Positions 29,907 through 63,885 of a DNA stretch of 64,000 bases are shown here, one piece after another (positions within the stretch are counted from its first letter, which is position 1; each line of letters starts with the position of its first letter). The DNA comes from Octopus sinensis (Eukaryota). Made by a program: the position numbers and the translations under genes. The stretch lies in assembly GCF_006345805.1 (NCBI RefSeq), contig NC_042999.1, forward strand, positions 131,192,001-131,256,000, in the 5' to 3' direction. The notes beneath the pieces are model-generated. The model searched no databases. It had not been told where the DNA came from and saw only the letters and a program-made list of their open reading frames with translations.

Positions 29907-30008
29907 CTGTTACTGCGGTTGAAGTGCATTCAGAGACCAGAGAAGATTCTGTTCCAAGGAGGGTATACGAATTGGCAGCAAACAGATGGGAATATAACAC
30001 CGTAATTC
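29907..30008 (-). CDS. Candidate exon of unassigned gene: (G)ITVLYSHLFAANSYTLLGTESSLVSECTSTAVT
   Basis: gtcttcatttcag|GA...CAG|gtgagt (perfect donor); 102 nt, open only in the phase-1 frame. Confidence 0.55.
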
Positions 30009-30808
30009 CTGAAATGAAGACATACTTCAGCCAGCGACTAAAAATCAGAATACCATAAGCCTGAAAGACGGAATACACAGCGCAACAAATCATAAAAATA
30101 CTTTAGGAAAATAGTAAGAAAAAACGGCCTCCAAAACATTTATTTACAAATTAAAAGATGATTACCGTCTCTACAATGTAGAGGGATCAGAATTCAAAGA
30201 TTTGGATCCAAAATGTTTCAAGTGATGAGACATGGCGTGTTGACATCTATTACTGGCTCCTCTAACGTCAGATCTTCTGTTAATGGTTCTAAATGTGTTC
30301 AGATGCTAGTTAAGGAGGGGTTTGAATTTGTTTGGTGGTAGAATGTTTTGTCTGTTAGAAAAGTGTGTGGTGATGTTTGCGTAGTACACGGTATTTTAGA
30401 GAAAACATTTGTTGTTGAGAAGCAAGTTAAGTAGGTTTTCTGTAGCTGCTGGAACTAGTGCTGGATATTGTGTGTAGGAGCAAATCTCCACGACGGTTTA
30501 TGTTGGTTAGCCGATCGACAAAATTTGGAGTTGCGGCGTAGAAAACACTGAAATAGTTTGTGTCGAAAATGTCTGGTATTTATGTGATGAGGGGAAATGC
30601 TTTCCAATGAGGCTTAAAAAGTATATAGCATTTATAAACATGTTTCTCACTAGGCTGAGAAAAGTTTTGCACATATATGCATATTTGTCTATGTATATAT
30701 ATATATATATATATATATATATATATATAGAGAGAGAGAGAGGTGCGATGAATAAATTGATTAAATTACGCAAAAATGAAAATAACACTGACATCTCATT
30801 TTAACAGA

Positions 30809-32058
30809 TATTGAGTCTTCCCATAAATAATGCGTTAAGATAAACTAATTTCTTTTTTTTAATCATTTAATCATAAACTAATTTCTTTTTTTTTAATCAT
30901 TTTCTACAATGCCTTTCCATCTATCTCGTAGACTTACACGGCCCCTTTTCCAATATTCACTTGTCCGTGACGAAAAATACTCCTTCAGTACTGTTCTGAC
31001 CTTGACTACAGAATTCATATTTTTTCCATCCAAATGATTTTGAAGACTGCGGAAAAAATAATAATCAGACGGGCAATGTTCGGTGAATATGGTGGGTGGG
31101 ACATCGTTTCCCATTCAAACTGTCCCAGCCTTTGGAATGTCATCCTCGCTGTATGTGGCCGAACATTATCCTAATGGAAGAACACCTTTTTGTCTTGAAA
31201 CCAAAGATGGTGGTTTTTCTTCTAGCGCTGTAGATCTCCTTTGTTATCGTTTGGTTTGGATTTAAAAGTTCAAAGTGGACTAAACCTTTCATATCCCGCC
31301 AAAGAGATAACATCTTACGTAGGTGAAGACCTTCTCTAGCCTGGTATGCCGGTATTTCTCCTTTCCCCACCCGCTGTATTTGGCACTTGACATTTTTAGG
31401 GAAATCATTTCTCGTCACCAGTCACTATTTGGTTCAAACATAGGTTCAATCGTGAGACGTGACAGCAAAGAAGAGCACACATTCACTCTCTGCACGCAAT
31501 TAGACTTTGAAAGTTTGTGAGGAACCTATTGACCCAATTTGCTGACTTTTCCGATGACACGCAGGTGTCGATGAATGGTTGAACGACCAAATCCGAGGTT
31601 CTCTGCTAGTTCACCAATAGTTACGATGGGATTTTGTTCTACCAGGGTTTGCAAGATGTTCCCATCGAGCTCTACAGATCTTCCAGGACGAGGCTCATCA
31701 TCTGGGTTGTAGTTTCCGGCTCGGAATTTCTGGAACCATAGTTGACACTGGTTTACGCTTATGGTCCGATCCCCATATACTGCATTGATATTCCTCGCAC
31801 TTTCCATTCCGCTGTTGCCTTTATTGAACTCATAAAGCAAAATATGCTGAATATGCTCTTTTGTCACTCCCATTATAGCTTTGAAAAAGTAATTGTTAAA
31901 ATTGAACTTCACTCTTCAAAACTTGCACTAAGAATAAGGCCAAGGTAAAATTACTACCTGGTTTTATAGCAAGTTAATGCAGGTAGTTCATCCTGTTCCC
32001 CTCCGACTTTTAGTTCATGCAATTGGAAAAACTGCACTGTTTGTGGGATGACCTAATC
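30809..32058 (-). mobile_element. Full-length decayed mariner DD34D element (about 1.25 kb)
   Basis: HIQHILLYEFNKG...WFQKFRAGNYNPDDEPRPGR HTH; 34 residues between D(NVRPH) and (PS)D(YYFFRS) across a frameshift; imperfect TIRs ATTGAGTCTTCCCATAAATAATGC / ATTAGGTCATCCCACAAACAGTGC. Confidence 0.9.
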
Positions 32059-32089
32059 TATTTACCAAAATTACATAGAAATATCTTGA

Positions 32090-32790
32090 AATACTAAGGA
32101 GTAAATTTATTCAATAAAATCTCCATTGGCTTCAACCACGGCCTCCAGACAACATCGGAATTTCCTACATCTCTTCTAGACGGTCTCCTTGTTTAAGTCG
32201 GTAAATGCTTCCATAATCCTTGCCTTCAGTTCATCTTTGGTGTTACTAGGAATTTTTTTTTTGTCTCTCGCCCAACTGCGTCCTACACATAATAATCAAG
32301 GGGATTGCAGTCTGGGGAGTTAGGTGGCCAGATGTTAGGGGTGATGTGGTCGCAGAAATTGTCTGACAGCTATGATTGGATTCTCCTGCTTGTGTAGCAC
32401 AGTGCAGAGTCCTATTGCTAGACATAGGGTCTTTAAACACCCACTCTCTTGGGCCAGGGCAACACTATTTCCTCTAGGCACTTGATGTAGGCGTCCGTGT
32501 TGAATTTGAGGCTGTGTAGGAAGATGAATGGAAGCATGACGTTGTCATTACTAGTAATCACTCCAAACACCATGATGTTGACTGGATTTTTATCACTCTC
32601 CGTACATGTTTTGGGCGATACGGCAAGCCAACGGTTGTTCTGTGTATTCACCATCTGTTCGTATTGGAGCTTCTGGCGCGAATGCCAAACAGTACAGCAT
32701 GTCGTTTTCAAATTTTTGGCAGTGTGAATTACGTCATGGTGCTGTTTTTCATATAAGCGATGCCCATCTGACCTTACTATACAGTGTAGT
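32090..32790 (-). mobile_element. maT-type (DD37D) Tc1/mariner transposase fragment
   Basis: IMVFGVIT...Q*DSALCYTSRRIQS*LSDNFCDHITPNIWPPNSPDCNPLDYYV; 37 residues between second and third D; ends LEAVVEANGDFIE*. Confidence 0.85.
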
Positions 32791-33197
32791 CGACAAAATC
32801 AAAACAATGCGCAAAATTAAAAATATCAAATGGCAAAAATTTACCCATTACACTTTGTGTGTGTGTGTGTGTGTGTGTGTGTGTGTGTTTTGGATTATAC
32901 AAGATTATTTTCCTGTTTGTATTCTTAGTTTTAGAGTTGTTCTGTGGTGGGATGTATGTAGACGTGTCTTTGAAACAGCTTTAAAATTATTAGTAAAATA
33001 ATCTTAAATACGTCAGCACTTGCAGCACATATTTAATACTGCGTTGTACAAAAGTATGAAGAGTCTATGAAGAAATTTTCTATTAAGGTTTTGATTATGG
33101 CAAAGTTGTCGGAGGATGTGTATATGTGTTGGATTGTTTCTTTATATATATATATATATATATATATATATAATATATATATATTAAATAATGAATT

Positions 33198-62150: not shown

Positions 62151-62519
62151 TATATAATATATATATATATATATATATTATATATATATATATATATATA
62201 TATATATATATATATATATATATATATATTGGCCTGCTCACTTAGCTAGCGGGGTGGCGTCATTTGAAGGCTAAAACAATGCGAAGTGCATTGTGACCAG
62301 CGATGTTTAGTAACATCTGATAGCCTGGTCGGTCACGGTGATATATATATATATATATATATATATATATATATATATATATATATATATTATATGCTTG
62401 CACGAATAGAAACACATATATACACATATACACGCATATGCATATATGAATACACATTTATATATGCTTATATGCGTGCATTCAAGCAAACATACATACA
62501 TATATACATACATATAAAG

Positions 62520-62960
62520 CGAATTAGCTGAATCGTTAGTGTCGGATTGAATGCCTTTTGTTATTTGCTTCCGTTCTCTGCGCTCTCAGTTCAAATCCCA
62601 TCGTCGTCGACTTTGCGTTTCACCTTTCAGAGACAATAAATGAACAGCTAGTCAGATACTGGAGCCGATTTCGGATTAAGGTCGTGGAGAACCACTGAGA
62701 TCATCTTTTTCTCTAGTAATTACGAAGTCTTGAGCCAGACTCTTAGCAACCTCTTCTCGCAGAACCATCAAGGAGAGGGCAATATGCTCTGTGTGTGTGT
62801 GTGTGTGTGTGTGTGTGTATGTGTGTGTGTACGATCCGTTATGTTCTGGGTTCAAATCCTGCCATGGTCGATTTGCTTTTCATCCTTCCGGATTGGTGGA
62901 CGATGAAATAAGAGCAGAGTTTTGGAATAGCGATCATCTAGTGATAGTTCTTCCAAATTA
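62520..62960 (+). mobile_element. Two decayed SINE family B fragments
   Basis: GAATCGTTAG...CAGTTCAAATCCC...GTCGACTTTGCGTTTCA and GGGTTCAAATCCTGCCATGGTCGATTTGCTTTTCATCC. Confidence 0.65.
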
Positions 62961-63256
62961 GATAGGTCACCCTACCTTCAGTATAAGTAATCTTGTGTTT
63001 TATGCAATGGGAATAATGTTTCTGGAAGAATTATGTTCTTTTTGTTTGTTTGTTTTTTGTCCAAAACTTTCAATTTTCTTTTTACGTTTCCCCACCTCCA
63101 CCCCTTAATCTGTGCCCCTTTCCTTCCCCATGATGCAGTGTTTAGTACAAAAACTTCGTTAAAATAAGTACTCAAGTACAAGTGACGATATGATTTACTA
63201 GTTACCAAAATATCAAGATAAATAAATACTAATGATAGTATATGTTAATAATAAGG

Positions 63257-63470
63257 GTTTCAAATTTTGGCACAAGGCTAGCAGTTTCAGAGGAGGGGAC
63301 AAGTCGATTACGTTGACCAATGCTCCAACTGGTTCTCATTCTATCGATCCCGAAAGGGCGAAAAAGAAAGTCGGCCTAGGTGGAATTTGAACTCAGAACA
63401 TAAAGACGGACGAAATGCCGCTAAGTATTTTGCCCAGCATGCTAACGATTCTGCCTGCTCGCCGCCTTAG
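63257..63470 (-). mobile_element. SINE family B copy
   Basis: Full consensus from TTTCAAATTTTGGCACAAGG to GCTCGCCGCCTT. Confidence 0.87.
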
Positions 63471-63625
63471 TATGCATGAATAATAATAGTATCTGTTAAT
63501 AGTAATATGAGTTATAATTACAGTATTAAAGTTCACAACAATTAGAATTTTTTCAAAATTATATCGTTTGAGGAAACGATTTCACTGTCGTCTTAAGGCA
63601 ATGGGCAGTTGGCCGGGGGCCTCAC

Positions 63626-63885
63626 AGGTCTAGGGCCCCAATTCTGTAAATGAATAAATACTATAGGACCCAGTGCACTGATTTGCTTTGGAACCCATAA
63701 TGCCGCTAAGATGACCCTGCTACTAGTTTTAAATGCAATATTGGTATTCATCAGATTTTCACATAAAAAGTATCGTTCCATCTCATTATCTATCTCAATC
63801 GTTCCTTGATGTATTTTAGTCATTAATTGTTCCGAATTTTTGTTAAAGAAAAAAGCACTAATTTTCTCGGTCGCTTGAGAATTCT
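63626..63885 (-). CDS. Candidate exon of unassigned minus-strand gene: (E)NSQATEKISAFFFNKNSEQLMTKIHQGTIEIDNEMERYFLCENLMNTNIAFKTSSRVILAALWVPKQISALGPIVFIHLQNWGPRP
   Basis: Acceptor ttttatttgcgtttcaactag|AG, open frame of 86 codons, phase-0 donor CCT|gtgagg. The donor position is uncertain because weaker in-frame GT sites lie upstream. Confidence 0.4.

Follow-up and report, generated by a model that had tools for sequence, protein, structure and literature searches.

Does the minus strand of this part of the Octopus sinensis genome carry an unassigned gene of seven exons? An earlier note, made from the letters alone, had read the window (the whole stretch analysed, 64,000 nucleotides of contig NC_042999.1, positions 131,192,001 to 131,256,000) in this way. 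We asked which of the seven segments are exons, to which gene they belong and what the encoded protein resembles.

Four coding exons on the minus strand

The claim of a multi-exon protein-coding gene on the minus strand was borne out, but the gene has an assignment. It is LOC118762575, a single-copy gene whose existence is not news, since it is already in RefSeq with three annotated isoforms, X1 to X3 (XP_036357230.1, XP_036357231.1 and XP_036357232.1). RefSeq labels it "uncharacterized protein" and gives no function or domain; a literature search found no paper naming LOC118762575 or its Octopus bimaculoides orthologue LOC106881721. Three of the proposed segments (54453-54352, 47120-46921 and 36547-36152, the fourth to sixth of the chain), together with a first coding exon outside the window, correspond letter for letter to XP_036357230.1, that is, isoform X1 of 383 amino acids (P0005 below).

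The coding sequence thus lies in four minus-strand exons. The first of them, 449 nt long, is found beyond the upper end of the window (L003:292-740, equal to contig 131256292-131256740 and equivalent to window positions 64292-64740). Its ATG is at L003:740, and the donor after L003:292 (CAG/GTATCT) fits the phase of the fourth segment, which follows after a first intron of 9.8 kb. This fourth segment is coding exon 2 (54352-54453, minus strand, 102 nt), a cassette that covers residues 150/151-183/184. Coding exon 3, the fifth segment (46921-47120, minus strand, 200 nt), covers residues 184/185-250/251, and the coding part of the last exon (36147-36547, minus strand), which consists of the sixth segment, one further codon and the stop, covers residues 251/252-383. 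The acceptors and donors of the fourth and fifth segments and the acceptor of the sixth had been placed exactly. The translated stretches matched to P0005 (L003:294-740, 54354-54452, 46922-47119 and 36150-36545) recur in it without a mismatch as residues 1-149, 151-183, 185-250 and 252-383; R150, S184 and D251, which are missing from the exon translations, come from the codons AGG, AGC and GAT at the junctions. All three exons in the window are single-copy in the genome. When the whole genome was searched in six frames with P0005, four places only were matched, all of them exons of LOC118762575, so that the gene has no paralogue. Among the sequencing runs listed, the sixth segment was present only in small ones, which we guess to be RNA.

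Orthologues were found only in O. bimaculoides and in Argonauta hians. A word-index search returned the isoforms of LOC106881721, with a 90% cluster that includes LOC118762575 X1, X2 and X3, and an exhaustive HMMER search with the peptide of the sixth segment returned a single cluster, P0001 of Argonauta hians (residues 249-371 of 372). The O. bimaculoides protein (XP_014787688.1 and isoforms) is colinear over its full length, with 365 of 379 residues identical to the exon translations. The Argonauta protein (Ahia01_000288500) is also colinear over its full length, has its end at the same position as the Octopus proteins and is 73% identical to the protein of O. bimaculoides. It differs in that six linker residues seen in Octopus are missing and that its first exon is strongly diverged (80/149 identical, with indels). 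In residues 125-250 and 320-383, the Octopus and Argonauta proteins hardly differ. The peptide of coding exon 2 is 100% identical in O. bimaculoides and 30/33 identical in Argonauta, and that of coding exon 3 is 64/66 and 58/66 identical, respectively.

A candidate HMG box in the conserved core

The N-terminal half of the protein is of low complexity and poorly conserved, and contains one basic cluster, KKKRKIKK. It is followed by another basic cluster, KNRKRKK (54414-54434), and by a strongly conserved domain of about 65 residues (176-237), the start of which is encoded at 54354-54377 in coding exon 2 and the bulk at 46961-47119 in coding exon 3; the C-terminal region is conserved and helical. 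The earlier note had recognised no family here, and indeed no curated family matches the protein. By its sequence and its predicted fold, the conserved core nevertheless looks like a very divergent HMG-box domain. In our judgement a four-exon gene for a putatively nuclear, DNA-binding protein with such a box is the best explanation of the locus, with a probability of roughly 0.6.

The HMG box is an L-shaped fold of three helices, and a basic strand at its N-terminus, immediately ahead of helix 1, sits in the minor groove. The octopus protein resembles this domain (PF00505), and especially the Sox type, in having a basic stretch and then three predicted helices, with A-F and aromatic residues in helix 1, a proline after helix 1, a tryptophan in helix 2, and K..Y, an alanine and a tyrosine in helix 3. 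It differs from the HMG box in that the K-R-P strand adjoining helix 1 is missing (some 13 residues lie between the KNRKRKK cluster and the A-F of helix 1), in that a proline stands where a glycine precedes the helix-2 tryptophan, and in that it has no relatives through which it could be linked to an established HMG subfamily. There is also a weaker, alternative register, in which RKRKKNSNSF is paired with the K-R-P-x-N-A-F strand.

Four kinds of test converge on the HMG family and on the same register. When the whole protein was compared by ESM Atlas features, the 10 best family hits were all HMG-box clusters (0.75-0.81), and residues 155-245 gave HMG-box clusters at 0.85 and 0.83, scores which, being below 0.9, count as leads only by the Atlas's own calibration; for the domain alone, the top feature match was a NUT cluster. 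The Atlas model of residues 176-243 aligned to HMG-box proteins in 8 of the 8 cluster sets listed (TM by query 0.57-0.63, where values above 0.5 mean little for short stretches and both sides of the comparison are predictions), and the listed structure neighbours were HMG box, UBF, HBP1, SSRP1 and Sox15.

For a comparison by sequence, a hidden Markov model was built from 15 HMG boxes of the O. sinensis genome. Residues 176-237 align to its positions 8-69 with a score of 11.3 bits, which was reached by one of 5,000 shuffled sequences, while the reversed sequence scored 0.8; P0002 scored 12.3 bits, reached by none of 3,000 shuffles. P0002, P0001 and P0005 are database proteins that were used as full-length queries, whereas each exon of the window was searched singly. 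Reciprocally, a model of the orthologue cores gave 7 of the 15 true boxes scores above all 200 shuffles; the register was again the same, and the best scores fell on the Sox-type boxes of the O. sinensis genome. These shuffle tests overstate the significance because shuffling of residues destroys helical periodicity. The same register was found by hhalign, with P = 0.024 and a probability of 2%. The core residues paired by the model with the A-F, W/F, P, W, K..Y, A and Y positions (F179, W182/F183, P195, W210, K218, Y221, A225 and Y233) are all the same in Octopus and Argonauta. In the AlphaFold model, helices fall at 173-191, 199-204 and 208-231, with low confidence; since its mean pLDDT is 32, this model, run on an alignment of two sequences, is unusable for a fold search.

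Could the core instead be a helical domain of the octopod lineage that has nothing to do with HMG boxes, for example in an orphan adaptor between proteins? This explanation leaves the four-exon model as it is, and we consider it rather unlikely, although several observations speak for it. The protein does not match the Pfam model: neither full-length P0001 nor the exon peptides matched HMG_box at E values up to 10, and the curated score of 25.4 bits was not reached. The exon peptides are an incomplete test in this respect, because the domain is split between coding exons 2 and 3. Likewise, a profile search of PDB sequences found no HMG box and returned a single chance match to alpha-galactosidase (E 2.1). 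The low confidence of the AlphaFold model points the same way, as does the fact that the HMG signals are individually weak (Atlas at most 0.85, HMM 11 bits, hhalign P 0.024), and short domains of three helices can look alike when they are rich in basic and aromatic residues. Against a lineage-specific domain stand the convergence of the four kinds of test, the HMG-box identity of all eight cluster sets listed and the invariance, between Octopus and Argonauta, of the residues that align to the HMG hydrophobic core; we prefer the divergent HMG box. The Pfam search also returned one stray sub-threshold match to FRQ, on the low-complexity first exon.

The same stretch had also been likened, faintly, to a homeodomain layout. 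What stands of this likeness is a basic cluster ahead of a helical domain of about 60 residues. The homeodomain itself finds no support: neither P0001 nor the exon peptides gave a homeodomain match in Pfam at E values up to 10, there was no homeodomain cluster among the Atlas feature or structure neighbours, and the motif W-F-x-N-x-R, which marks helix 3 of homeodomains, is absent from the peptides of coding exons 2 and 3. The signals that this stretch does give, weak and consistent, are those of an HMG box.

Splice variants and possible function

If the core is indeed an HMG box, the protein would enter the nucleus by way of its basic clusters, the KNRKRKK cluster ahead of the domain possibly being a nuclear signal; the domain would bind or bend DNA, and the C-terminal helices may contact partner proteins. 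The annotated splice variants would fit into this scheme. The three isoform types of LOC118762575 in O. sinensis recur in LOC106881721 of O. bimaculoides. In both species isoform X2 lacks exactly coding exon 2, and skipping this exon would cost the protein its KNRKRKK cluster and the N-terminal half of helix 1, disabling the box. In isoform X3, an alternative donor extends coding exon 3 by 13 nt (exon end 46908); the tail of this isoform is explained by the extension and then by reading of the last exon in a shifted frame, a shift that would remove the C-terminal region. Thus, if the isoforms are real, one form would be without the DNA-binding domain and another without the C-terminal region, and the pattern annotated in two Octopus species would toggle the HMG box.

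Taken further, LOC118762575 would be a taxonomically restricted, single-copy HMG-box gene, seen only in incirrate octopods and lying beyond the curated profiles, in which splicing conserved between species would either switch off the DNA-binding domain, when coding exon 2 is skipped, or remove the C-terminal region, when the alternative donor is used. We put this wider proposal forward tentatively, at somewhat less than even odds. If it is true, the gene would be a lineage-specific regulator of chromatin or transcription in octopods; what would be new is the assignment of a divergent HMG box to a protein for which the databases give no domain. Nuclear regulators confined to one lineage hold some interest for biology specific to cephalopods, and no trait is tied to LOC118762575 here.

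It could also be that the locus is transcribed and not translated, and that gene prediction produced the annotated protein as a by-product. The proteins are predictions, after all, and one half of the sequence is low in complexity. We regard this as quite improbable, because O. sinensis, O. bimaculoides and the argonaut, a member of a different octopod family, all keep a four-exon frame of 383 codons open and share its exon borders and its stop. Moreover, the conservation towards Argonauta is uneven in the manner of protein domains (30/33 in coding exon 2 and 58/66 in coding exon 3, as against 80/149 in the first exon).

Proposed segments outside the gene

We return to the chain of seven segments. 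All seven are present where they had been described, each with AG before and GT after it on the minus strand; the chain is stop-free over 392 codons, with phases 0, 0, 2, 2, 1 and 1 when translation begins at base 3 of the first segment, and the peptide motifs quoted from it all occur in the translations. Of this model the fourth, fifth and sixth segments, single-copy and contained in the annotated proteins, are true exons, whereas the first, second, third and seventh are not. The peptides of the latter four are absent from every orthologue and isoform compared. As a whole, the seven-segment chain is no better than chance. On the minus strand there are 1,938 AG...GT segments, 30-300 nt long and open in one frame or more, in the 9.5 kb upstream of coding exon 2, and 2,859 such segments in the 10 kb downstream of the sixth segment; with some 1,900 of them upstream of coding exon 2, chaining by chance is easy.

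The first segment (63626-63885, minus strand) is an open segment within the true first intron, and its 3' third (nt 157-244) is derived from a repeat with at least 40 scattered copies at about 80% identity, from 128 candidates. The second (61357-61392, minus strand), in the same intron, is an open segment of 36 nt, a size that is common by chance. The third (59516-59598, minus strand) had been counted among the four best-supported central exons, a claim that holds for the other three. While it does contain the motif LVFPWVWPDW, it too lies in the first intron and forms an inner part of an interspersed repeat, with at least 40 copies in the genome that are 92-100% identical, each over the full 83 nt. 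The repeat itself is about 615 bp long (59384-59996) and present in thousands of copies: queried with window positions 60000-59200, of which positions 5-617 of the query matched, it gave 5,517 candidates at first look, and the 40 that were scored were all 81-88% identical over about 610 bp. As regards synteny with LPCAT, which the earlier note had suggested as a check, ten further open stretches at 11-29 kb had no Pfam match, and an LPCAT gene was not confirmed in the window.

That the seven segments form a further, unannotated isoform, with an intronic start, a repeat-derived third exon and a splice at 36152 that bypasses the stop, is the least credible explanation of all: borders and phases fit, and repeat-derived exons and stop-bypassing splices are known in animals, but the peptides occur in none of the six annotated isoforms of two species, the donor at 36152 (GTTAAC) matches the consensus poorly, the third segment is one of thousands of repeat copies, thousands of equally good open AG...GT segments lie nearby, and the first three segments hold no conserved sequence initiated by ATG and give peptides that match nothing. 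Chaining open segments between AG and GT over tens of kilobases of repeat-rich cephalopod intron, then, recovers real exons and adds false ones equally readily; copy number and colinearity with orthologues quickly tell them apart.

The seventh segment (29907-30008, minus strand) lies outside the gene, 6.1 kb downstream of the stop and the candidate poly(A) signals. It is spurious because the coding sequence stops at a TAA (36147-36149), one codon past the proposed donor at 36152, after which AATAAA signals follow. The end of the protein at 36150 agrees across the three species. The hydrophobic segment that had been described across the sixth and seventh segments is not real, and the protein ends in ...GALAVG. 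A reading of this run as a C-terminal tail anchor or transmembrane segment was rejected too, as the run does not exist and the real C-terminus, LSLTLTLLAELEASGALAVG, has two glutamates. A probable short 3' UTR (36050-36146, minus strand) can be read downstream of the stop, with AATAAA at 36086-36091 and 36050-36055, that is, 56 and 92 nt past it; these would act as candidate poly(A) signals. Beyond the probable 3' UTR, a TG/TA microsatellite runs from about 35860 down to 35530.

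Gene structure at the locus

The minus-strand gene that the earlier note had regarded as unassigned is already annotated as O. sinensis LOC118762575, and the exon translations are found exactly within its isoform X1, XP_036357230.1 (P0005, 383 aa). In L003, the stretch just beyond the upper end of the window, the translation of 294-740 is an exact substring of this protein (residues 1-149), and the same is true of 54354-54452 (residues 151-183), 46922-47119 (residues 185-250) and 36150-36545 (residues 252-383). The codons split by the junctions, AGG, AGC and GAT, encode R150, S184 and D251. 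Searching the entire genome in six frames with P0005 returned those four places and no others, and the coding sequence is thus divided among four exons, with a first intron of 9.8 kb. By tblastn, the N-terminal 150 residues map to the minus strand at L003:291-740 (window-equivalent 64291-64740), just outside the window; this first coding exon, also on the minus strand, starts with an ATG at 740 and has a CAG/GTATCT donor after 292, with a phase that fits exon 4 (54453-54352; we keep the earlier numbering of exons here).

Upstream of this ATG on the minus strand, L003:741-790 (also outside the window) contains 14 consecutive T followed by TTATAG, ending 21 nt before the ATG. The pattern resembles a splice acceptor; there may thus be a non-coding 5' exon further upstream.

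At the other end, we ran the exon-6 peptide against 1.84 billion representative proteins in an exhaustive HMMER search. The only match was P0001, a hypothetical protein of 372 aa from Argonauta hians, whose residues 249-371 match with 76% identity. Since the match reaches residue 371 of 372, the protein should end one residue past exon 6. Indeed, when the minus strand is read past the proposed donor at 36152, a Gly codon and a TAA follow; the frame closes one codon later, P0001 stops there too, and both this donor and a seventh exon (30008-29907) have to be given up. AATAAA signals within 36050-36091 occur 56 and 92 nt past the stop, with a TG/TA microsatellite after them. A word-index search with P0001 found the isoforms X1 (383 aa) and X2 (349 aa) of O. 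bimaculoides LOC106881721, and the 90% cluster of this X1 also contains the isoforms X1-X3 of LOC118762575.

The seven-segment chain and repeats

As a reading of the sequence, the chain of seven segments in the earlier note (63885-63626, 61392-61357, 59598-59516, 54453-54352, 47120-46921, 36547-36152 and 30008-29907) is accurate in its borders, phases and quoted peptides: all seven have AG before and GT after them on the minus strand, and the chain holds 392 stop-free codons when the frame opens at the third base of segment 1 (against 22 and 38 stops in the other two frames). Taken alone, such an open chain is no evidence of a gene. We counted the minus-strand segments of 30-300 nt that are bounded by AG...GT and open in one frame or more: 1,938 lie within 9.5 kb upstream of exon 4 and 2,859 within 10 kb downstream of exon 6. 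Therefore, phase-compatible additions to a chain are always at hand.

Only the middle of the proposed gene stands. Searches of the 2.72-Gb genome found exons 4, 5 and 6, which are contained in P0005, to be single-copy. The peptides of exons 1, 2, 3 and 7 are absent from all seven database proteins compared; the first three of these segments fall within the 9.8-kb first intron, and the last lies 6.1 kb beyond the gene end. Exon 7 has one partial match elsewhere in the genome (79%), and the last third of exon 1 has at least 40 scattered copies with about 80% identity. Exon 3, the one with the aromatic motif, has at least 40 full-length copies with 92-100% identity and is a piece of an interspersed repeat. 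A wider genome query placed it inside a repeat of about 615 bp (59384-59996) with 5,517 first-look candidates, of which all 40 that were scored match at 81-88% over about 610 bp, pointing to thousands of copies in the genome. The 3' flank of this repeat (59200-59380) contains short inverted or palindromic repeat pieces with matches on both strands.

Conservation, isoforms and a putative HMG box

The Octopus and Argonauta proteins align with 73% identity. Residues from about 125 to 250 and 320-383 are nearly invariant, and variation is found in the first 120 residues and in the linker 250-320. The two basic clusters of the protein are KKKRKIKK (57-64) and KNRKRKK (157-163), and the low-confidence AlphaFold model predicts helices at 333-352 and 361-376, in the conserved C-terminal region. 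We found relatives in Octopus and Argonauta only, that is, in separate families of incirrate octopods, with an exhaustive search for the exon-6 part and a word-index search for the core (just 10 candidates with any common word). The restriction to octopods is thus provisional.

Isoform X2 lacks exactly exon 4 (34 residues, in frame) in both Octopus species. Isoform X3, again in both, keeps coding exons 1-3 and extends the third by 13 nt through an alternative donor (exon end 46908), and its last exon is read in a different frame for 16 codons, which give the tail of the database proteins P0006 and P0007. The RefSeq pipeline bases the alternative isoforms that it proposes on transcript alignments, and the variants are therefore likely to be backed by RNA in both species. 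Among the sequencing runs listed in a search with exon 6 (20 runs from 10 studies), three of 62-69 Mb, whose kind is not recorded, contain all exon-6 words, and small runs from several organisms, guessed to be RNA, contain 0.31-0.49 of them; as a sign of expression these matches are only suggestive.

As the earlier note had it, no curated family is recognised: neither the exon peptides nor P0001 match Pfam, and we were not able to find a match in a profile search of PDB sequences. AlphaFold on the two-sequence alignment reached a mean pLDDT of 32. In the ESM Atlas, the 10 best family matches of the whole protein are all HMG-box clusters (0.75-0.81), and residues 155-245 match HMG-box clusters at 0.85 and 0.83. 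With the Atlas's own model of the protein, 176-243 aligns with a TM by query of 0.57-0.63, and all eight cluster sets listed are HMG-box proteins.

We built a test HMM from 15 distinct HMG boxes of the O. sinensis genome (PF00505 search). Residues 176-237 pair in one piece with model positions 8-69, and F179, W182/F183, P195, W210, K218, Y221, A225 and Y233 fall on the core residues of the family. Against residue shuffles, a lenient null for helical sequence, the P0005 core (101 residues) scores 11.3 bits, reached by 1 of 5,000 shuffles (0.8 when reversed), P0002, a further database protein, 12.3 bits (0 of 3,000), and P0001 9.9 bits (3 of 3,000). Reciprocally, an HMM of the orthologue core scores 7 of the 15 true boxes, six of them Sox-type, above all 200 composition-matched shuffles in the same register, which hhalign also gives (P = 0.024). 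Every single one of these signals is weak; the four kinds of test nonetheless concur on the family and on the register. In summary, we consider a divergent HMG box in the core to be the probable reading (roughly 0.6-0.65). The gene itself being annotated already, this domain assignment is what may be new.

Such a protein could be imported into the nucleus through its basic clusters and bind or bend DNA through the HMG-like domain, with the conserved C-terminal helices perhaps binding partners. Without exon 4, the protein would lack a basic cluster and helix 1 would lose its first half, so the box would presumably be disabled; the X3 variant would retain the box and lose the C-terminal region.

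Surrounding sequence

Transposon remains are abundant in the surroundings. Two minus-strand open stretches with HTH_48 (Mos1/mariner transposase) at 31529-31915 (E 1.7e-20) and 33996-34370 (E 3.7e-07) are transposon remnants between the gene end and the proposed exon 7. A PIF1-like helicase stretch on the minus strand in the last intron (45455-45811; E 5e-05, 23.4 bits, below the cut-off of 25.9) is likely to be a Helitron-type remnant. A long compound TG/TA/CATA microsatellite (35530-35860), about 290 nt past the stop codon, accounts for the overlapping ORFs in several frames at 35500-36008. Finally, 16000-19000 is a large block of simple or low-complexity repeat, with a GC of 0.155, a strong GC skew of +0.74 and, on both strands, long ORFs in every frame.
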